Shown here one piece after another: positions 23,285-35,281 of a stretch of 64,000 nt of DNA; within the stretch, counting starts at the first letter, position 1; each line of letters begins with the position of its first letter. A program made the translations under genes and the position numbers. This stretch comes from Rebecca billardiae RCC1528 (Eukaryota > Protista > Haptophyta). Below the pieces are notes generated by a model. It was not told the origin of the DNA. It did not search any database and was given only the letters and a program-made list of their open reading frames with translations. The DNA lies in NCBI GenBank assembly GCA_965240325.2, contig OZ251242.1:1178001-1242000 (forward strand), in the 5' to 3' direction.

Positions 23285-25132
23285 CTACGCACCCCGGCAC
23301 CACAGGCCCAGGGGTGGCAGCTGCGAAATCCGCGCAGGAGAGACGAGGTCGTCCACCCCGTCGTCAGAGCTCACGCCATGGCCGAGCGCGGCCCTCTGCC
23401 TGCCACACGAGTACGCGCCGCCGTCTGACGTGATCCAAAGCGACTGGCGCCAGTCGACAAAGCCGTCCACCAGCGGGCCATGCGCTGGGGCGTGCACACG
23501 CACCGGAAGCAGCTGCTCCGCATCAGCTGAGCCGATGCCGAGCTGGCCGTAGCGGTTGTAGCCAAACGTGTACACGCTGCCGTCCGCGCCCATCACCGCG
23601 CTGCAATAAAAGCCCGCGCTGGCGCGCACGATGCGCACGCCCTGCAGCGCCACGATGCGCCTGGGCACGAGTGCGGCAGATTCGTCACCATGGCCAAGGC
23701 AACCAAACGAGCCACGCCCAAACGAGTGCACACCGCCTGTGGCATCCACCACCAGGCTGTGCCCATCTCCCGCGCTCACGTGCACGGCGCGCACGCCCTC
23801 CAGCGCCTCGATGCGCTGCGGCGTGCGCAGAGTGCGGTGGTCGCCATGCCCGAGCTTGCCTGCGGCGCCCCACCCGCACGAGTACACGGCGCCACTCGTC
23901 GACAGCAGCAGCGTGTGCCCGTAACCAGCGGACATGCCGCCCACGCGCACGCCCTCCAGCGCCTCGATGCGCACAGGCTCCAGCCGGTCCTCAGTGTCGC
24001 CATGGCCGAGCTCGCCAAGCTCGTTCAATCCCCAGCTGTACACACCGCCCGCAGCAGTGAGCGCGAGGCTGTGCTGGCCACCAGCGGCGATGCCCACGAC
24101 GAGCCCCATGCTGCTCATGCCCAGTGCGGTGAAGACACGACGCGTCTCCTTGTCGCCCACGCCCAGCTGGCCGTGGTCATTCTCACCGCACGCGTACACG
24201 GCACCACCGTCGCTCAGCGCGAGCAGGTGGTGGTAGCCAGCGCCCACCGCGCGCACGCGCATCGCCGAGAGCGATGCCACGCGCGTCGGCACGAGGACGG
24301 CCGACTCGCGCAGCTCCGGATGGCCCAGCGCAGCGGGCGCGCACAGCCCTGTCTCACCAGACTCCTCGCCGCACGTGTGCAGCCCGCCCGACGCGTCCAC
24401 GAACGCGCTGAACGTGATCTGCTTGTCGTCATCGCTACTGCCCATCACGGCCACGCACCCGTGCGCAGTCGCCAGCTCGAGCACGCGCTCGCGCGCAAAC
24501 AGCTCCGCCCGCCACGAGCACGCGTGCGCGGGGAGAGCCGCCGGCAGCGCGCCCTCATGCCCACGCTGCTGCGCGCGCTCGAGCAGTGCGTGCTCCACCG
24601 GCGAGCGGCCGGCAGGCGTGCCGCGGAAGAGGCGCGAGGTGGCATTCAGGCTGGCCAGATCCTGCGCAGCCTCGAGCCAGCCGAGGATGCGCGAGATCAC
24701 GTCCGTCGGCAGGTCGCACAGCGTGAGGCCAGCCGTCTTGGTCGGCGCTGCGGCCGTGTCGCCGAGGGGAGGCTCGCGCTGCACGCCAGTCGCCCCGTCG
24801 GCCGCAGAGCAGCCTGTGCACGTCGCGCACGTCGCGACGTCGACGTGGCGCCACGCGCCTAGCTCGCGAATACCATCGTACTGCGTCCTCGCCGACGCCG
24901 CCTTCGTCACGCGCTTGCACCCGGGCCGGCCGCACCGCACGGCGCAGCGCTCGGACGCGAGCGCGTGCTGGAAGAGGCACACGTTGTGCGCGACGTGCTC
25001 CGCGCCGCACGCGAGCTGCGCCCACGGCTGGCTGCCAATTTGATCGCCGCACAGCGCGCACGGCACCTCGACGACCGGGGGCGCGGCGGCGGCGCCATCG
25101 TCCGGGCGCGAGCGCTTCGGCGAGGGCTCCAT
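23285..25132 (-). CDS. RING-like zinc finger + F-box + RCC1/BLIP-II beta-propeller protein
   Basis: Likely ATG at 25132 (MEPSPKRSRP, NLS-like). RING-like CALC..C..H..H..C..C..PGC; F-box LCDLPTDVISRILGWL..DLASLNATSRLFR; about six RCC1 repeats (AGxxHSLAL..GxVYSWGxNxxGxLGHG). Confidence 0.88.
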   Translation of the reverse strand: MEPSPKRSRPDDGAAAAPPVVEVPCALCGDQIGSQPWAQLACGAEHVAHNVCLFQHALASERCAVRCGRPGCKRVTKAASARTQYDGIRELGAWRHVDVATCATCTGCSAADGATGVQREPPLGDTAAAPTKTAGLTLCDLPTDVISRILGWLEAAQDLASLNATSRLFRGTPAGRSPVEHALLERAQQRGHEGALPAALPAHACSWRAELFARERVLELATAHGCVAVMGSSDDDKQITFSAFVDASGGLHTCGEESGETGLCAPAALGHPELRESAVLVPTRVASLSAMRVRAVGAGYHHLLALSDGGAVYACGENDHGQLGVGDKETRRVFTALGMSSMGLVVGIAAGGQHSLALTAAGGVYSWGLNELGELGHGDTEDRLEPVRIEALEGVRVGGMSAGYGHTLLLSTSGAVYSCGWGAAGKLGHGDHRTLRTPQRIEALEGVRAVHVSAGDGHSLVVDATGGVHSFGRGSFGCLGHGDESAALVPRRIVALQGVRIVRASAGFYCSAVMGADGSVYTFGYNRYGQLGIGSADAEQLLPVRVHAPAHGPLVDGFVDWRQSLWITSDGGAYSCGRQRAALGHGVSSDDGVDDLVSPARISQLPPLGLWCRGA

Positions 25133-25545
25133 GTCGTCGCTCGGCAGCGGAGGCTCGCTTTCTCCGTGTTGCTCGCGGTCGTGTCGTTGCTGCCACTGCG
25201 GCGCGATTTTCTCAGAGTCGCGATGACCGTTGGCCGCCAATGGCCGGCCGAATTTCTTTATTGCGGCGCGCGGATTTTTCGCGTGGATCGGATTTTTCTG
25301 GCGCGATCGGTGAGCGGACAGTGACAGTACGATGAGCGCGCTGCACGCCTGCACCTACTGTAAGACACTGGGCGACAGCAGTGTTGTGCCGGCCCGTAAT
25401 ATGCTGATGCTTCCACTGCTCCGCCGGTCTGACGGTCAGCAGGCTCATCATCGCGTATCATCGATCGGAGCGTGGCACCGACGAGCGCGCAGCAGTGACG
25501 AGTTTGACGGCATGGCACCGCGCAGCGCGCCACCCCTCCTCAGTC

Positions 25546-27379
25546 TCACGCGAGCAGGTCGTCTGCTGCTGCTGCTGCTGCTGCCGCTGCGCCATCGCCG
25601 CCGCCCGCCACCCCATCTGCAGCTGGCTCGTCCGGCTCGAGGAGCTGCGCCGGGCTGCAGAACGGCGAGTCGAGCTCCGGCCCGGAGTCGGGCGCGTCGC
25701 CCTGCGCCTGCGCCCCAGCGGCCGCCACCGCTTCCGCCGCCGCCGCCGCGCCGCTCGGCTCAGGCGCGGCACGGAGGGTGTCCGGCGCTGCTGCTGCGGC
25801 CGAGCCGCGCCCGTTGGCACCGCCGAGCGCGTGCGACGGCCCCCACGGGTCGTCCGCGCCGAGCGCCGCGCGCGCGCCCGAGGGCGCGCCGAGGGGCAGC
25901 CGCGCGCCGCTCGCGCCGTCGGCGGCGTGGGCGGTGGGTGGCCACGCGGTGCGCGGCGCGTCGGCCGCGCCGCCGTGCGCGCCCGCGGCGGCGGCCGCCG
26001 GCAGCGCCCACGGCACAGCGAGCCCGCCGTCGGCGGTGCCGGCCGCGCCGCTCGCGCCGCCGCCGCCGATCCAGGGCGGCAGCGCCGAGTGCGGCGGCGT
26101 GTCGAGCAGCCCGCCGCCGCGCGCGCCGCCGTCGGCGCCGCCGCTGCCGGCGGGTGAGAGCGCGGCGGCGGCGGCCGCTCGCTTCCGTCGCAGCGCGCGC
26201 TCGCACTGCGCGGTGGCGAGCCGGCTGGCGCCGAGCGAGCACGCGGCGCCTGCGAAGAGCAGCCAGCACCCGTGCTCGAGCCTCGCCTCCACCTCGAAGC
26301 AGCGCGCGTCCTCCCCGAGCAGCGGCCGCGCGAACGCCGCGAGCCAGCGCTCGAGCGTGTCGCACCGGTGGCCGACCACAAATCGGGAAAATCGATTAAT
26401 CTGCAAAAGGGCGCCGAGGATGGAGGCGACGAAGACGTCGAGGGCGGACCAGGCGGCGGCCACCTCGGCGAGCGTGAGCAGCCGCGCCTGCGCGCGCAGC
26501 CGCAGCGGCGCCGCCCACGCCACGCCCACCAGCCCCAGGTGCGCCAGCGGCATCAGAAGATTAAACAAATAAAATGAGCCCACGAGCACGGCGCTGCCGA
26601 GCGCCGCGCCCGCGTCCGGCTCCGACGCGCCGGGCAGCGCGGCGCCGAGCGAGAGGAGGCTGTACCGCGTGCGCGCGCGCTCGCCGAGGGCCACGCCCGC
26701 CGCGCCGCCGAACTCGAACGAGAACGCGGTCGCGCGCGCCCCGAGCATGATCAGCAGCGCCGCAAGCGGCAGCAGAGCGAAGCCAGCCCACGCGCGCGCG
26801 CGCGCGCGGCGCGTGCGCGCGCGCGCGTGCGCGCTCAGCGGCGAGCGCGCCGCGGCCGCGGCGCCGGCGCCGGCGGCGCCAAAGCCGAGCACACCGCGCG
26901 CACCGCCCTCCTCCTCCTCCTCCGGGAACGCGTGGTACGCGCGCAGTCGCTCCGTCTCCGCATCCGCCTCCTCCAAGCCCTCCGCGCCTTCGGCCGAGCC
27001 GCCGCCGCCGGCGCCGAGCCCGCCGGCGCCGAGGCCGAGCCCGCCGCCGCCGGCGGTGGCGCCGAGTGGGGCGAGGTCGGCCGCGCCGGCGGCGCACGCG
27101 CCGCTGCGCGCCATCGGCGCCGAGCCGTCCGCGCGTGGCGGGCCGCCGCCGAGCCGCCGCAGCAGCGCCCAACGACGGCCTAGCGCCGCGCCGCCGCCCG
27201 GCCGCGCGCCGCCGCGCGCGGCGCGGCCGGCGGCGGCGGCGCCGCCGGCGCGGCGCCACGGGCTGAGCATGGGCGTGAGCTCGATGAGGCAGATGCCCGC
27301 ACTCACGGCCAGCCCCGGCCAGCCGCCGCCGCGCCCACCGCCGCCGTCGCCCCCAGCCGCCTCCGCCTCCGCCCCCTCC

Positions 27380-27440
<61 letters not shown>

Positions 27441-28466
27441 TGCGCCGGTCGTTGGCGTGCGCGGCCAGCGTGAGGTGCCCGAGGCCGAGCGAGAGGATCG
27501 TGGCGGCGAGGAACGCGAAGAAGCCGAGCTGGGGCCGCACAATCACCTCGACCGCGCCCAGACTCAGCCCGCCGCCGCCCAGCCACTCGGCCGGCGCCTC
27601 GATCGTGAGGTGGAAGGCGACCACCATCAGGGTGAGCACCGCCGCGTCGAGGAGCGACCACTTGCCGAGCAGGTCGAGCGCGAGCAGCGCCGCGCCGCGC
27701 TCGCGCGCGCCCAGCGCCCAGCGCGGCGCGAGCACGCAGCCCAGCAGCAGCGCCAGCTTGGCGTACGGCCACGCGCCCGAGAAGAGCGCGATCAGCGCGG
27801 CGAGCGGGTACACGCCTGCCGCCCACATGTCGTGCACGGAGTTGGCGAGGGAGAAGTCGAAGAGGGAGGGCGGCGCGAGGGCGACGCCCGCGGGCGTGCG
27901 CACGTGCACGTGCACAGACGCGCCCACGCTCGCGTTCGCCACCGCGAACGCGCACATGTTTAGCGCCAGCGCGCAGCACAGCGCGCACGAGCGGCCCGCG
28001 CCAAGGCTGTCTGCGAGCGTGGCGCGGCCGCGCGCGCGCGCGGCTTCGGCTTCGGCGGTGGCGAGCGCCGCCGCCGACGCGCCGCCGCCGTGGTGGTGCT
28101 GCTGCGCCTCCAGGCCCTCCGCCGCCGCCGCCGCGCCGCCGGCCAGCGGCTGCTGCGAGGGCGAGCATGGCGGCGAGCGCGCGCCGCCCGCCGCGCCGCC
28201 GAGAAATGGCTCAGCGAGCGACGAGCGTCCGCGCGGCGCGCCGCCGCCGCGCGCGCCGCGCGCGGCGCGCCGCAGCCAGCTGAGCGCCGGCGCCGCGCGC
28301 GGCGCCTCCGCCGCGGGCGGGCGTGGCCCGGCGGCGCGCTCGAGCGCGCGCGCGCGCACGCGCGCCGCGCGCCACAGCCGGTGCGCGCCGGCCAGCGTCG
28401 CCGCTGCCAGCGCACACAGGCTCAGCAGCGTGGCCGCAAGGAGGGCGGGGTGGGCGGCCGCGGCGC

Positions 28467-28497
<31 letters not shown>

Positions 28498-30382
28498 GGG
28501 CTCGGCCGCGCACAGCGCGGACGCGCTGCGCAGCGCGCGGCGCAGCGCGCCCGCGAGCAGCGGCGGCGCCAGCTCGGCCACCGCGTACCCGACGCCGGCG
28601 CGCACGGGCGGCAACAGCGTGTTGTCTGAGCGTGCGAGCGCGGCGCGCAGCGGCTCCCAGTCCCATTGGCTGCCGCCCGCGCCCTCGCCCGCGCCCTCGG
28701 CGTGGTCGAGGCGCACGGAGACGCCGCCCAGCTCGGCGCGCAGCGCGCGCGGCGCGAGCCACGCGCCGTACACCCCGTCGCCGCCGCCACCAACGCCCGC
28801 GCTGAGCGCGCACGCGAGCGCGCGCTCGCTGCCGAGCTCCGCTAGCGTGAGCGCTGAGAACGGCGCGGCGCCGAGCAGAGCGTCGAGCGCGGCGGACAGG
28901 CGGAGCTGGCGCAGCTCGAGGCTGAGGCTGAGGTTGGCGCGGAGCTGCTGCGCGCCCAGGCCGGCCAGCGCGAACGAGCCGGCCGCGCTCACGCGGAGCG
29001 GCGGCAGCGGCGGCCCCGCTGCCGCGCCGCCGCCCAGCTCGAGCCGAGCGCCGAGCGCGGCCGCGCACGCGCCCTCTCCCGCGCCCGCGCCCGCGCCGTG
29101 GGCGGGCGCGGGCCAGAACGAGGCGTTGCGCGGCGGCGCGCGCGCTGCGCACGCCGCGCCGCCCCCTTCGCCCGCCGCGCCCGCCCCGAGCAGCAGCGCG
29201 GCGGCGGCCACGCCGTCCAGACCGCCGACGCGCGCCGAGATCAGCGCGAGATCGACCGAGCCGAGGTCCGGGCCGAGCTCGAGGTGGAGTCCGGGCAAGC
29301 GGGCGGGGGCGAGCTCCCACGCGCCGGCTGCGCCGGCGCCGGAGGCGTCGGCGCGCCACGCCGTCACGCCGCGCGTGAGCGCGTTCAGCACGCGCGCGCT
29401 CACCGGCCGCTCGAGCAGCGAGCGCGCGGCGCGCAGCGGCGGCAGCCGAGACCAGGCGAGCGCCGCGCGCGCCGGCGGCGCGCGCGGCGCGGCGCACGGG
29501 CCGGCGAGGCGGCGCGCGGCGCGGAGCGCGCCGTCGAGCGCGCGCGCGCCGAGCGCGTGCTCCGCGTCCAGCGCGCGCGCGAGCGCCGACGCCGCGCCCA
29601 CCGCCTCGCCGCCGTACGCGCCGAGCCACTCGGCGGCCGCCGAGTTGAGCGCGGCCGCGGCGCCGCGCAGCGCGGACTCGTGCGCCGGCGGCGCCCGTAG
29701 CACAAGGAGCTGCGCGCCGCCGAGCTCGGCGTCGAGGGCGAGGGTGCTGAGGCGCACGCGCTCGAGCGCGGACAGCGCGCACGCCGCCGCGCCGCGCCAC
29801 CCGCCCGCCACGCCGAGCAGCTGCCCCAGCGACAGCGCCAGCGCCACGCTGCCGTTCACAGCCCCGAGCAGCGTCGCGGCCGCGCGCGGCGCGTGCAGCG
29901 TCGCGCGCAGCGCCAGCCTCGCGGACGCGTGCGCGGACGGGCGGCGGCGGGGGTGCGAGTGCGACGCGCCGCCGCCGCCGCCGCCCGCGCCGGGCCCGAG
30001 CCCACCGCCGCCGCCGCCGCGCCGCGCCGCGCCCCGCTCGCCCACCTCCACCTCCAGAACGGCCGTGAGCTCAAGCGATTCGAACGCTGCGGCTACGGCC
30101 ACTGACTGCGCCTGCGCCGGCGTCGGCCTGGTCACGCGCAGCGCGGAGAGGGAGGGCAGCCCGCGCACGCGCAGCTCGTCGAGCCACGCGGAGAGCGCGC
30201 CGAGCCCGCCCGGCAGGCTGCGGTCGAGGGTCAGCGGCTGCAGCAGCCCGGACACGCCCACCGAGCCGCCGCCAGCCGCCGAGGCCTCTGCCAACACCGC
30301 GGCCGCGTCTGCGGCGAGCGAGTCTATCCGCGCCAGCACGTCGAAGGGGGCGGCTGGCAGGGCGAGCGCGCCGGGCAGCGAG

Positions 30383-30413
<31 letters not shown>

Positions 30414-32034
30414 CGAGGGGCTCGCACGCGCCGCCCTCCGCGCCGCCGCCGCCGCCGCCGCCGCGCTGCAGCGCGCGCGCCACCGCGTCGCGCGCCGCCT
30501 GCGTCAGCGCGTCCGCGCCCGATGTGATGAGCCACCCGCTGAGAACGGCCGGCAGGCCGTTGGCCGAGGCCTCGAGGAGCGCGCCGATGGCGGCGTCGAG
30601 CGCCTCGTCGAGCTGCAGCTCGAGGCTCGAGCCCTCCTCCGCCGCGCCCTCCGCCCACGCCTCGCCACGGTCCACCGCCGCCCCCGCGCCCGGCGCCGCG
30701 CCGGCCGCGCGCACCGCCGCGCGCGGGCCTACGCTGAGGCTCTCGATAGAACCGATGTGGGCGGCGAGGGAGCGCACGCCGAGGCTGGGCAGGTGCAGCG
30801 CGCCGAGGGCGCAGCGCGCGACGCGCGCGGCGCCGTCCCACGTGGCGAGCTGCGCGGCGCTCAGGTTGCGCAGCCGCGCGCCCTCCACCGGCACGTCGAA
30901 CCAGAAACGCATGCGCAGCGCGCGCGCCGCGACGCGCACGGTCGCGCGCTCGCACAGCGGGCGGCTGCCGTTGAGCCTGCCGCCGCTCGCCGCGTCGACG
31001 GCGAGCGCGAGCGCGGCGCTGAGCTCGAGCCGGTCGATGGCCAGCTCGAGCTCGAGCGCGCTGCGGTTCGCGCCCCCCGCCGCGCCCGGCCGCAGCGCAA
31101 AGCCGTGCGCGCCGCCCAGCCCTGTCAGGTTGAGGCCGAGCACGCTGACGCTGAGGTTCGCAAGGCCAGGGACGTCCACGCCGAGCTCGCGGCCGTGCAG
31201 CGCGGCGGGGATCAGCGGCAGCGTGCCGTTCAGCTCGAGCGCGCGCGCGAGCGCGCCCACGCCCGGCGCGCCGCCCGGCGCGCCGTCGCCCAGCAGCGCG
31301 CTCGCGAGCGTCGCCGCGGCGGAGGCGGCCGGCACGTCAGCCCAGGCGAGCGTGGACGGCGGCGGCGGCGGCGGCGGCGGGCGCGGGGCGAGGTGGGCCG
31401 GCGCGTACGGCGCCAGCCTCGCGTCCAGTCCCTCGAGCGCCTCCGTCACGTTCGTCCCGACCAGCTCGCGCACCGCGCCGCAGATCGCGGCCGAGATTGC
31501 AATCTCGAGCTGCGCCTGGAAGGCGGACTCGAGCGCGTCGAGCAGCCCGGCAAAGATGGTGCGCGAGAAGAGGACGGAGGCGATCTCGATGGCGGCGTCG
31601 CACGCCGCCACGCTCGCGCCCGAGGGCAGCCCGAGCGCCGCGTCGGTGCGCAGCCGCACGCCGAGCGCCACCGACGAGTCGGCGACCTGCGCGGCCACCG
31701 AGCCGCTGCCGGATGGCACGTGCAACGGGTTGCGCGCCGCGTACGCCCAGTCGGCGGCGCAGCTGATGCCGATGCCGCTCGCGGTGAGGTCGAGGCCCGG
31801 CGGCTCCGACGCGCGCGCGCTCGACAGCGCGCGCAGCGTCACGTTCGCGCAGCGCAGCGCGCTGAGCGAGACGTCGAACGGCAGCAGCGAGTTGTCGAGC
31901 ACGCGGAAGTGAACGTCCGGCATGGCAAAGTGGAGCTGGTCGAGCCACGAGAGGAGCGGCGAGGTGGCGTTCTGCTCGCACTCGCGCGCCCACGGCGCGC
32001 CGAGCGCGAGCAGCGCGAGCGCGACGGCCGCCAT
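25546..32034 (-). CDS. Large membrane protein: signal peptide, BPI/LBP-like N-domain, three TULIP-like repeats, TM helix, two PqiA/LetA-like membrane domains
   Basis: ATG 32034 MAAVALALLALG. PqiA-type motifs FSLANSVHDMWAAGVYPLAALIALFSGAWPYAKL..LGKWSLLD and AAWSALDVFVASI. The N-domain has a BPI-like beta pattern ending ISAAICGAVRELV. Intronless, 2,162 aa. Confidence 0.8.
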
Positions 32035-32219
32035 CAACTCAGCCCCTGCGCGACCCGGGCAGCGAGCGCGGGCGGGTGCGCCTGCTGATGCAACGCGCTG
32101 GCGTCGCGCGCCTGCAGCAGCGCCGGTCTCGGCACGCAAGGTGGCGCCGTGACCGGCGAACGCGCGCCGGACTCCAGTGATCTCCGCTCAAGACCCCTGG
32201 CCACCGGGGCGGCTGCGGC

Positions 32220-33398
32220 ATGCATGCCGTCAATCCCCGTCATGCATTCTTCACGGTCCTTGTCAGCCTCGCCGGAGTCGCCACCAGAGGATGGAGCATC
32301 TGGGGGACTGCCGTCGAACCACTCGCCCAACCGTTCGTCGCACAAAAGGCAGGCATCAACTCGGGCAACATCATGAGCAACATAAAGGTAAACGGGCTAC
32401 CCGGCCGACAACTGCTTTTCATTCACGTAGGCAAAGGTGCACGCCGCGAACGCCATCCGCCCTGGCGCGCCTTTCAGCGCATCCGCTCATGCGCACGGGA
32501 GCCCCGTGCACGCGCACACGCAGCTGGTGGCAAGACCGTGCGCGAGTTCATGAACACCATGAGCATCCCCTACGTGGAGTCGCACAGGCAGCTAACACCG
32601 GTACCGCTGATTCATCTTGCCGCGAGCAGCAAGGTGGTCGTCTCAGTGCGTGATCCGCTCGATCGCGCTGTCAGTGCGTTCTACTCCAGCTGGCACAGGC
32701 GCCCAGAAGAGTGGCAGTCGTGCTTCCCCACAGTGGACCGGCTCGCGGAAGCTCTCGTGGACCCGGCGAGCGGCGCGAGCGCAGCGTGCGTGCGCCTCGC
32801 CCAGCAGCCGTTTTACACGGATGACCCCGCTGACGCGCAGGGCCACCTGGGCAAGGGCTTCACGCTCTACTTCAACGACCGGGTGCTAACGACGCTCGAG
32901 AAAACGTCGGACGTGTATCTGGTCCGCACCCCGCGCATCGACGAGGACCTGCCGGGGCTTGTTCAGTGGCTTAAGGGATCCAGACCGGGAAGGACCGTGC
33001 GCGTGCCCCGGGGCACGGCCACCCTTGGGCAGCTGGTGACGCACCAGCACAACAACTCGGCCAATCACGCAGCCGGCGAGATGGCCGAGCACCTAGCCCA
33101 GCCGTTTGCGGTGCACCTCGCCCCCGAGTATCACATCGTGGCGAGGCTGCTCTGCATGAGCACCAACGCGTTCCAGGTGCCCGCCGTGTTCGGGCGCATG
33201 CAGATCAGTGCGTGCTCGCCGCAGCCGCTCGCCCACTTCGCGCCGTGCAACCTGTCGACGGCCTGCCGCACGCTCGCCCACGACGCGGTGGCGGACTGCG
33301 TCGTGCGTGCAGAGCCGAGGGCGGCCTGGCAGACGTGTCCCCCTGAAGACGCGAACGCTGAAGACGGTCGTCACGGATCTGAACTCCTCGGCGATTAA
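32220..33398 (+). CDS. Golgi-type sulfotransferase (Sulfotransfer_2-like); intron 32437-32523
   Basis: Removing the 87-nt GTGCAC..GCAG intron restores the 5'-PSB motif LLFIHVGKAGGKT; 3'-PB motif VVVSVRDPLDRAVSAFY; N-terminal hydrophobic anchor. Confidence 0.82.
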   Translation: MHAVNPRHAFFTVLVSLAGVATRGWSIWGTAVEPLAQPFVAQKAGINSGNIMSNIKVNGLPGRQLLFIHVGKGARRERHPPWRAFQRIRSCAREPRARAHAAGGKTVREFMNTMSIPYVESHRQLTPVPLIHLAASSKVVVSVRDPLDRAVSAFYSSWHRRPEEWQSCFPTVDRLAEALVDPASGASAACVRLAQQPFYTDDPADAQGHLGKGFTLYFNDRVLTTLEKTSDVYLVRTPRIDEDLPGLVQWLKGSRPGRTVRVPRGTATLGQLVTHQHNNSANHAAGEMAEHLAQPFAVHLAPEYHIVARLLCMSTNAFQVPAVFGRMQISACSPQPLAHFAPCNLSTACRTLAHDAVADCVVRAEPRAAWQTCPPEDANAEDGRHGSELLGD

Positions 33399-33925
33399 GT
33401 TCGCGAGCATGTTGGGCATGTGCCCGACTGGATTCGACAGGCTTCACGACGCGCGCGAGGGCTTGCGACAGTGGTAGAGAGACGTATCGGGTAGGAGTAC
33501 CCGCACGCGCACTCACTACGGCTCGATCCGCCCGACTTTGGCCATGTACGCGCAGGCGTGCCGTCTCAACACGGCTGGCGCCGGCCGCCGCACGCAGCAG
33601 GCAAGCGGCGGCAAGGACAGGTGTGGGCACGCCACCAAGGTGTCGAAGCGTCTCCGGCACACGGGCACGCCTCCCACGAGACCCTCTACGCCACCCCGCC
33701 CTCGCTGTCGGGACGCCCTACCGTGCACGTACACGCGCAAGGCACGCGGGGCACGCGCACGTGCGGCAGCCATCGAGCCGTCGGCACACCCTTGCGTCGG
33801 CGGCCGGGGTCGCGGGGACAATTAAATTTCGGACCCCCCCTTCTGGCGCAGTGTCAATGGGTCCTGGACGCCTTGACCAGTCCAGGCCAACTACTGTAGC
33901 GCGTGGACGTCCAACGTCCACCATC

Positions 33926-35281
33926 ATGCCGAGCCCCGCCGGCGCGGCGCGCAAGGTGGTCTACTTCTGGGGCGCCAAGCCGTCGTCCGGCGCTTTCGCG
34001 TGCCTCTCCAACTTCTACCCGTGCCGCTTCGTCGACGCGGAGGGCCACGCCTTCCACTCCTCCGAGCAGGCCATGATGCTCGGCAAGGCGCTCGTCTTTG
34101 GCGACGCGGAGGCGGCCGAAGCGATCATGCGCACGCGGCACGCGAAGGAGGCGAAGCAGCTCGGCCGCACGGTGCGCGGCTTCGACGAGCGCATGTGGGC
34201 CGAGCGCGCGCGCCAGATCGTCGAGCAGGCCTGCTTCAACAAGTTCGCGCAGAACGAGGAGCTCCGCGTCGCGCTGCTGCGCACCGGTGACGCGCTGCTC
34301 GCCGAGGCCTCGCCCTACGACGCGATCTGGGGCATCGGGCTGAGCGCGAGCCAGGCGGAGGGGATGGCGCCGCACGAGTGGCCCGGCACCAACTGGCTCG
34401 GCCTCGTCCTCGGCGCCGTGCGCGAGCGGCTGCGCGCCCACAGCTCGGAGCGCGCGCCTGTGTCGCTGCTGGGCGCGCCGCCCGCGCCGCCCCCGCCGCG
34501 CGCGGCCTCACCGGCCGACCCGGCCGAGGCGACAGGCGCGGCCGAGGCGGCCGGCGCGGCCGAGGACGCGGCCGCGCCGCGAGACGCGCACACGCACCTG
34601 CTCGTGCTCGACTTCGAGGCGACGTGCGAGGCCGACGCGAAGCGCTTTCCTCACGAGATCATCGAGCTGCCCGCCGTGCTGCTGCACGCGCGCACGCGCG
34701 AGCAGGTGGGCGAGTTCCGGACGTTTGTGCGGCCGACGGAGCGGCCGGCGCTGAGCGCGTTCTGCACGGAGCTCACGTCGATCACGCAGGCGCAGCTGGA
34801 GGGCGCGCCGACGCTCGGCGAGGCGCTGCGCGACCTCGAGCGCTGGCTGGACGAGGCTGGGCTCGGCCAGCCCGCGCGTGTGCTGCCCGTCACGTGCGGC
34901 GACTGGGATCTGGGGAAGCAGCTGCCTGCCGAGTGCGCGCGCAAGGGGCTGCGCGTGCCCGCGGTGCTCACGCGCTGGTGCAACGTGAAGCGCGCGTACG
35001 CGGCGGCGATGCGCACGCGCAAGTTCACCGGCATGGCGGGCATGCTCGACGGCCTCGGCCTCCCGCTCATCGGACGGCACCACCTCGGCATCGACGACGC
35101 GCGCAACATCGCTGCGATCGCGCGCACGCTCGGCGCGCGCGGTGCCGCGCTCGAGCAGACGGGCGGCTCGAGCGTGGAGGACGTCACGTCGCCGGCGGCA
35201 CCGTCGGCGTGCGGCGGAGTGGAGCCGCGGCGCGGCTCGTCAGATGCGCCTGAGACGGCAGCGGCGCCTGCCTCATCGTGA
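33926..35281 (+). CDS. NADAR (YbiA-like) domain fused to an ERI1-family DEDDh 3'-5' exonuclease
   Basis: NADAR: LSNFY, SSEQ, AKQLGR, KFAQN, LAEASPYDAIWGIG, GTNWLG. Exonuclease: VLDFEATC, HEIIELP, FVRP, FCTELTSI, VTCGDWDL, GRHHLGIDDARNIA. Intronless. Confidence 0.92.
   Translation: MPSPAGAARKVVYFWGAKPSSGAFACLSNFYPCRFVDAEGHAFHSSEQAMMLGKALVFGDAEAAEAIMRTRHAKEAKQLGRTVRGFDERMWAERARQIVEQACFNKFAQNEELRVALLRTGDALLAEASPYDAIWGIGLSASQAEGMAPHEWPGTNWLGLVLGAVRERLRAHSSERAPVSLLGAPPAPPPPRAASPADPAEATGAAEAAGAAEDAAAPRDAHTHLLVLDFEATCEADAKRFPHEIIELPAVLLHARTREQVGEFRTFVRPTERPALSAFCTELTSITQAQLEGAPTLGEALRDLERWLDEAGLGQPARVLPVTCGDWDLGKQLPAECARKGLRVPAVLTRWCNVKRAYAAAMRTRKFTGMAGMLDGLGLPLIGRHHLGIDDARNIAAIARTLGARGAALEQTGGSSVEDVTSPAAPSACGGVEPRRGSSDAPETAAAPASS

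Follow-up and report, generated by a model that had tools for sequence, protein, structure and literature searches.

A four-module TULIP chain joined to a LetA/PqiA-like membrane domain in a predicted single-exon gene of the haptophyte Rebecca billardiae

Introduction

This study concerns one long gene in a stretch of DNA of 64,000 nucleotides from the haptophyte Rebecca billardiae RCC1528 (contig OZ251242.1 of assembly GCA_965240325.2, positions 1,178,001 to 1,242,000; the window). The gene lies on the minus strand at 25546-32034. Its product carries a chain of domains of the TULIP superfamily, then a transmembrane (TM) helix, and then two units of the PqiA/LetA family. In the inner membrane of E. 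coli, LetA (YebS) and PqiA partner the MCE tunnels LetB and PqiB (PMC13017536; PDB 9n8w).

Proteins that combine the two kinds of domain have been described. Wong & Levine 2017 listed CETP/BPI proteins of protists and amoebae that are anchored by a C-terminal PqiA domain and placed them at the plasma membrane (PMC5507252), and the LetA paper mentions LetA-like fusions in eukaryotes (PMC13017536). The name TUPAL for this class comes from Guillen-Samander et al. (bioRxiv 2026), who reported one or two BPI-like domains per protein; '2xBPI' forms are found in Viridiplantae and dinoflagellates, and Haptista are among the clades with PqiA proteins (10.64898/2026.09.11.750981). In experiments on the malaria parasite Plasmodium, PfTUPA was located in the membrane of the digestive vacuole, its TULIP domain facing the lumen, and proved necessary for the clearance of internalised membranes. 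Its loss made membrane material accumulate in that vacuole, and its TULIP-like domain is reported to be important for function (10.64898/2026.09.11.750981).

Results

The minus-strand frame at 25546-32139 runs for 2,197 codons without a stop, and its first Met, at 32034, gives a protein of 2,162 residues (Table 1). Open frames alone are uninformative here because the gene region is about 80% G+C. The G+C content of third codon positions (GC3) is 0.89-0.97, with GC3>GC1>GC2, in each 150-codon window of 25546-32034(-), and the flanks at 25130-25490 and 32240-32600 have a G+C content of 0.52-0.67, to which no 90-nucleotide window inside the gene drops. No intron-like dip in G+C was found inside the frame. 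Since GC3 is uniform and the drop to the flank values is absent, the gene was read as apparently one exon, and the linker, the inter-unit loop and the C-terminal tail (residues 1216-1345, 1534-1741 and 1960-2162) look translated rather than intronic. PqiA and TULIP-like domains are thus predicted in one polypeptide, encoded by a single open frame with uniform coding statistics. An antisense frame of 1,747 codons at 26669-31912(+) overlaps the gene and gave no homology signal. It was rejected as a gene and regarded as a G+C artefact, as both homology and the GC3 phase fit the minus-strand frame.

Table 1. Features of the gene and its two paralogues. Positions are those of the window unless a paralogue locus is given; TM, transmembrane; pLDDT, predicted local distance difference test; HMM, hidden Markov model.
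Feature	Residues	Position	Strand	Basis or remark
Whole coding sequence	1-2162	25546..32034	-	2,162 codons plus stop at 25546-25548; apparently single exon
Signal-peptide-like N-terminus	1-16	31987..32034	-	Met, then Ala/Leu-rich hydrophobic run; judged by eye from the translation
TULIP module 1, BPI/LBP N-terminal-type domain (N-domain)	20-218	31381..31977	-	Sub-threshold PF01273; model pLDDT ~90 or more; LBP match
TULIP module 2, repeat R1, A-type	219-542	30409..31380	-	Opens with P8 linker; paralogue HMM
TULIP module 3, repeat R2, B-type	543-848	29491..30408	-	P9 linker at start; Gly-rich insert; pLDDT ~58-84
TULIP module 4, repeat R3, C-type, membrane-proximal	849-1180	28495..29490	-	P9 linker after
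Single TM anchor	1197-1215	28390..28446	-	Kyte-Doolittle peak 2.17
Cytosolic low-complexity linker (predicted)	1216-1345	28000..28389	-	Composition
PqiA/LetA unit 1	1346-1533	27436..27999	-	Four TM helices and luminal beta strands; PF04403; pLDDT >90
Disordered acidic Gly-rich cytosolic loop (predicted)	1534-1741	26812..27435	-	pLDDT <50; GC3 ~0.91-0.95
PqiA/LetA unit 2	1742-1959	26158..26811	-	PF04403 26.0 bits; pLDDT ~79-98, mostly >90
Low-complexity cytosolic C-terminal tail (predicted)	1960-2162	25549..26157	-	GC3 0.93; no family match
C3 paralogue		C3:1838208-1862015	-	7,936-codon uninterrupted frame; PqiA 43.6 bits
C27 paralogue		C27:1329049-1337524	-	Third TULIP and PqiA locus

The homologues of the protein likewise begin with Met and a hydrophobic stretch. 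The N-domain that follows matched the Pfam model LBP_BPI_CETP (PF01273) at 21.2 bits (E 2.5e-4), below the cut-off of 28.8, and is the only PF01273-like match in the genome. The same model is matched by 13 of the 30 aligned N-domains of the family (best E 1.7e-9), and two relatives exceed the cut-off. The N-domain resembles PF01273 at the level of the family.

Each of the three repeats of about 300 residues is preceded by a Pro-rich linker. In an independent test of these repeats, a hidden Markov model (HMM) built solely from the repeats of the C3 paralogue matched R1 at residues 216-516 (E 1.6e-34), R2 at 549-840 (E 1.5e-9) and R3 at 849-951 (E 3.5e-4), with a further weak fragment at 1022-1169. 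An iterated HMM to which database relatives had been added matched R1, R2 and R3 over their full length (E 7.8e-38, 2.1e-26 and 7.1e-23, respectively). The three repeats are homologous to one another and to the 23 repeats of the C3 paralogue. A GL(D) turn, a CAL helix and a C-terminal Cys are kept in every repeat, and the conserved positions of the CAL and C-terminal Cys suggest one disulfide per module.

The luminal part (residues 20-1195) was modelled with AlphaFold from a 49-row alignment of paralogues and database relatives. The model has a mean predicted local distance difference test (pLDDT) of 72 and a predicted template modelling score (pTM) of 0.50. By module, the pLDDT is mostly above 90 in the N-domain (blocks of 80-98), 70-92 in R1 and about 45-84 in R2 and R3, where Gly/Ala inserts are disordered. 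Every module has the long C-terminal helix that is typical of TULIPs. When the luminal model was compared with the PDB by Foldseek, the 33 best matches (through E 2.7e-3) were all members of the TULIP superfamily, and so were all later matches with a probability of at least 0.9 among the top 50. They comprise BPI (4.8e-10), LBP, CETP, Der f 7/Der p 7, JHBP, Takeout, SPLUNC1 and a beta-carotene-binding protein; the lower matches are clostridial OrfX/P47 proteins of low probability.

Alignment by VIA-align gave the same superfamily. R3 (residues 866-1171, model residues 847-1152) aligned with Takeout 3e8w at Z 11.2 with a root-mean-square deviation (rmsd) of 3.8 over 198/219 residues and with Der f 7 at Z 10.8, and the N-domain (residues 34-203, model residues 15-184) aligned with LBP 4m4d_A at Z 10.8 over 161 residues. 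The alignment with BPI (1bp1/1ewf) spans the N-domain and R1 at Z 10.2 with a large rmsd, so the angle between these domains differs from that in BPI. The fold match of R2 itself was weak (Z 5.9); R1 and R2 would be TULIP domains by their homology to R3. A long helix wrapped by a twisted beta-sheet is found in the luminal model by Foldseek and VIA-align together, and this is the fold shared by BPI, LBP, CETP, Takeout, JHBP and Der p 7, in which the sheet is strongly twisted.

The C-terminal part matched Pfam PF04403 (PqiA) in two stretches at 36.5 bits against a cut-off of 23.8. In a six-frame search of the genome the two units scored 33.8 and 26.0 bits, both above that cut-off. Unit 1 contains GKWSLLD (residues 1457-1463, 27646-27666) and unit 2 contains AWSALDVF (residues 1861-1868, 26431-26454). 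A profile of 28 eukaryotic PqiA regions had a single match in the PDB at E<=10, which was E. coli YebS/LetA (9n8w_A, E 0.0015, two stretches). The profile was needed to reach LetA, as a single-sequence phmmer search of the PqiA region against the PDB returned low-complexity noise only. In the profile alignment, the polar-network residues S321, K328, S364 and D367 of LetA correspond to S1419, K1426, S1460 and D1463, all in unit 1. The LetA motif and these four positions, which are essential in LetA, are nearly invariant across the eukaryotic family.

The AlphaFold model of residues 1330-1960 has a pTM of 0.73 and a pLDDT above 90 in both four-helix units, and the loop of about 210 residues between them is disordered. 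LetA was the top Foldseek match (E 8.4e-4), ahead of TARPs and claudins. With VIA-align, the model matched LetA 9n8w_A at Z 14.9 over 331/392 residues, covering both units (model residues 14-623); the next matches were single-unit TARPs at Z 8.8, and TARPs and claudins scored 8.8 or lower. LetA itself shows the same pattern of structural matches to TARPs and claudins (PMC13017536).

All elements listed in an earlier, sequence-only reading of this DNA are present where it had placed them. Its tandem BPI/TULIP-like domains are borne out by the fold search of the modelled luminal region, and its two PqiA units with a KWSxxD/AWSxxD motif by the Pfam matches above the cut-off and by the motifs themselves. 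The LetA pseudo-dimer that it had expected at the C-terminus was recovered in the alignment to LetA over both halves.

By sequence, unit 1 (27436-27999) aligns to the C-terminal module of LetA and unit 2 (26158-26811) to the N-terminal module. This suggests that the PqiA modules stand in the opposite order to those of the bacterial protein, or that both units were duplicated independently.

A six-frame search of the 72-Mb assembly found no MlaD/MCE domain (PF02470); the absence is a soft one, since introns could split a domain this short. The result agrees with the idea that TULIP modules stand in place of an MCE partner.

An Arg-rich stretch follows the TM anchor, consistent with the positive-inside rule. 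Asn is rare in the protein (1.2%). In the luminal part (28495-31977), 12 of the 18 Asn residues belong to N-x-S/T sequons, where composition predicts about 1.6; outside it, the figure is 1/7, and that sequon is located in the luminal loop after the first TM helix of the PqiA part. The C3 paralogue has 103 of its 175 Asn in sequons (about 26 expected). These counts imply strong selection for N-glycosylation of the predicted TULIP chain. The predicted order is a signal-peptide-like start, a luminal chain, a TM helix and a PqiA domain entering from the cytosolic side as in LetA. Because of the signal-peptide-like start, the one TM helix before an N-in PqiA domain and the sequon enrichment, we infer that the TULIP chain and the PqiA beta-sheets would lie on the same extracytoplasmic side. 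The two are reported to share that side in the whole TUPAL class (10.64898/2026.09.11.750981).

An exhaustive search of 1.84 billion representatives with the repeat profile retrieved 164 proteins (E<=1e-3), and a simple phmmer test found a C-terminal PqiA region in 71 of the best 150 of these 164 relatives. Repeats were counted with the iterated repeat HMM in the PqiA-bearing representatives, the N-domain not being counted. By these approximate and HMM-dependent counts, 17 proteins have one repeat, 23 have two, 3 have three, 24 have four, 3 have six and 1 has eight. Such proteins, with 1 to 8 repeats, come from haptophytes, diatoms and amoebae and from many environmental sequences. The named ones include the haptophytes Diacronema lutheri and Prymnesium parvum, the diatom Pseudictyota dubia and the amoebozoan Balamuthia mandrillaris. 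Haptophytes are the nearest, the closest D. lutheri protein being about 49% identical in the PqiA region. The P. parvum and P. dubia relatives are known from transcriptomes and combine the two parts in a single protein, which shows that relatives have fused mRNAs. A word-based protein search with residues 30-560 returned nothing; low-complexity words probably flooded its 8,000 candidates, so this result implies no absence.

The genome has three PqiA loci, namely this gene and the C3 and C27 paralogues, and both paralogues keep the fused order. The C3 paralogue consists of a signal peptide, a BPI-N-like domain, 23 tandem repeats of about 298 residues, a TM helix and two PqiA units. It thus has 24 modules, and many of its repeats are nearly identical. 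At C27, a 926-codon frame holds the signal peptide, the N-domain and the first repeat. The remainder lies in a 2,068-codon frame (PqiA 27.5 bits) in a different reading frame, with an overlap at about 1334747-1335252, which points to a short intron, a frameshift or an error of assembly.

In a maximum-likelihood tree of the repeats, R1 grouped with C3 repeats 1-21, R2 with C3 repeat 22 and the middle C27 unit, and R3 with C3 repeat 23 and the last C27 unit. Ultrafast-bootstrap support was 88-96, branches were long and composition was skewed; for these reasons our confidence that the repeats fall into three positionally conserved types is moderate. Read this way, the basic layout would be that of the four-module gene (cap, A, B, C), and amplification of the A unit would have produced the giant C3 protein.

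Other frames lie close to the gene in the window. A 689-codon frame at 23285-25354(-) has a weak F-box-like match and strong matches to RCC1-repeat propellers (WD40_RLD 244 bits). At 32220-33398(+), a frame of 392 codons gave a weak sub-threshold match to sulfotransferases (18.8 bits, cut-off 22). A 552-codon frame at 33623-35281(+) encodes a NADAR domain (160 bits) and then an RNase_T/DEDDh exonuclease domain (84 bits).

Discussion

In this study, we identified a gene of R. billardiae in which TULIP modules and a two-unit PqiA domain are encoded in a single frame. The identities of the domains, their order and the homology of the repeats are clear from the data, and the predicted topology has indirect support. 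We consider it likely that the gene encodes a lipid transfer protein of the TUPAL class, in which an N-glycosylated extracytoplasmic chain of four TULIP modules is tethered through a TM helix to an eight-TM LetA/PqiA-like pseudo-dimer. The four modules would be one BPI-N-type domain and three positionally distinct Takeout/BPI-like repeats, and the predicted type-I-like topology would place the chain in the secretory lumen or outside the cell.

Proteins of this architecture were known before; what is new here is a chain of four modules and repeats that fall into positional types. Like this gene, TUPALs combine TULIP/BPI-like domains and a two-unit PqiA domain in one polypeptide; their TULIP part is extracytoplasmic, as is predicted here, and '2xBPI-PqiA' forms likewise have a BPI-N-like domain first and PqiA last. 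However, the TULIP domains number one or two in the TUPAL preprint and four in this gene, whose repeats are of three positional types with moderate support from the tree. PfTUPA differs further in that its single divergent ApiTULIP domain is C-terminal to PqiA, while the TULIP chain is N-terminal in this gene. Compared with other TULIP proteins, the gene shares with BPI a Pro-rich linker between modules, and proteins of the BPI/LBP/CETP type are secretory or extracellular, as is predicted for its product. BPI, LBP and CETP have two modules and Takeout, JHBP and Der p 7 have one, whereas the four modules of this gene are membrane-anchored and fused to a transporter.

E. coli LetA and this gene have in common the PqiA Pfam family, two tandem four-TM tetraspanin-like modules and extracytoplasmic beta-sheets. 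They also share the G[RK]WSx-psi-D motif (GRWSM-psi-D-psi-F in LetA) and the counterparts of the polar network. By sequence, the polar-network module is the C-terminal one in LetA and the first unit in this gene. Unlike LetA, the protein has no Zn ribbons, no MCE partner was found in the genome, its two units are separated by the disordered loop of about 210 residues, and a covalently joined TULIP chain takes the place of LetB/PqiB.

The TULIP chain might instead be an extracellular sensor of lipids or glycolipids, or a defence module, with PqiA as its anchor or signal relay and no lipid passed between the two. BPI and LBP, both of which bind lipopolysaccharide in innate immunity, are among the best structural matches, the chain is predicted to be glycosylated and extracytoplasmic, and the Zn ribbons needed for LetA function are missing. 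However, the near-invariant motif and polar-network residues of the eukaryotic family are ones that matter in LetA for transport and not for folding. The pairing of TULIP with PqiA recurs across distant eukaryotes, which argues for functional coupling, and in PfTUPA both the accumulation of vacuolar membrane material upon loss and the importance of the TULIP-like domain speak against a sensor (10.64898/2026.09.11.750981). We therefore regard a sensor or defence role as unlikely.

Even less probable is a luminal region built not as a chain of TULIP barrels but as a beta-jellyroll or groove of the bridge type, as in VPS13, YhdP or Lpt. Such a structure was suggested for the LetA-like fusions of kinetoplastids and dinoflagellates, and some eukaryotic LetA-like proteins carry an extracytoplasmic beta-jellyroll (PMC13017536); the modelled luminal region is also rich in long beta strands. 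However, neither Foldseek nor VIA-align placed a structure of the Lpt, VPS13 or AsmA type in the top 50 for the luminal model. Complete single-domain alignments were obtained with Takeout, Der f 7, JHBP and LBP at Z 9-11, and the long C-terminal helix of every module is a TULIP trait. A further explanation, that the long frame is an artefact of a G+C content of about 80% and joins two neighbouring genes (one for a PqiA protein, the other for a secreted multi-TULIP protein) or hides an unrecognised intron, is weakened by the coding signal. GC3 values of 0.89-0.97 with GC3>GC1>GC2 continue unbroken across the junction of TM helix, linker and PqiA, with no fall to 0.52-0.67. The same fused order is also present in the two paralogues of the same genome and in 71 of the best 150 relatives, some of them transcriptome-derived. 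Long open frames are common in this DNA, as the antisense frame illustrates, and linker and loop are of low complexity; nevertheless, we judge such an artefact very improbable.

Several points weigh against the assignment of the gene as a TUPAL-class lipid transfer protein. The fusion is a prediction from the genomic frame. The repeats match no Pfam model, PF02886 included, and the repeat profile matches no PDB sequence, so that the TULIP assignment of the repeats rests on structure. No similarity between the N-domain family and the repeat family was found with hhalign (probability 0.2%), and sequence homology between N-domain and repeats is not claimed. R2 and R3 are modelled at moderate confidence, and the geometry from module to module is uncertain, as the pTM of the luminal model indicates. 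The Zn ribbons, which are essential in LetA, are absent, with no CXXC pairs in residues 1216-1345 or 1534-1741. Eukaryotic LetA-like proteins without Zn-ribbon domains have been reported (PMC13017536), and because of this absence the gene was placed in the eukaryotic LetA-like branch and not with the bacterial LetA/PqiA type. In addition, the sole functional data come from PfTUPA of a distant apicomplexan, whose single TULIP domain is C-terminal to PqiA.

The best-supported mechanism is proposed by analogy with LetA-LetB and PfTUPA. The PqiA domain would move phospholipids between the bilayer and its own extracytoplasmic beta-sheet and would hand them to, or take them from, the membrane-proximal TULIP module. 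The outer TULIP modules would let the protein reach a lipid source in the lumen or outside the cell, or a second membrane. By the same analogy, lipid binding, the direction of transport, the hand-over between modules and the cellular location are all proposed rather than observed. The sequence-only reading had stated that functional characterisation of such proteins was not known, a statement now outdated by the 2026 work on PfTUPA, itself a PqiA and TULIP fusion (10.64898/2026.09.11.750981). It had also linked the protein to lipid traffic at secondary plastids. This link is unsupported: nothing in the translation suggests a plastid, and the only functional precedent is a lysosome-like vacuole.

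Another possibility, which we hold to be rather doubtful, is that the TULIP modules line up end to end as an extracytoplasmic lipid bridge of adjustable length, with the PqiA domain feeding it. Position would decide the role of each module in such a bridge: the BPI-N domain would cap the distal end, A-type units could be added to lengthen it, and a B-type unit and a C-type adaptor next to the membrane would complete the chain. The span would depend on how many A units are present, with this gene as the basic four-module form and the 24-module paralogue as the extreme. The continuous conduit put forward in the sequence-only reading stays an inference, because the inter-module geometry is uncertain. 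Alternatively, each module may act as a tethered shuttle.

TUPALs have been recognised as a class only in 2026, and one of them has been studied, in Plasmodium. Given the published class, the present finding is useful but unsurprising. If true, the end-to-end arrangement would be a new way to build bridge-like lipid transport from shuttle-type domains. The gene shows that the TULIP part of TUPALs can be extended in modules and that one genome can hold 4- and 24-module versions. It bears on the question of whether PqiA-coupled TULIPs work as short-range shuttles or as long bridges, for which natural length variants are available.

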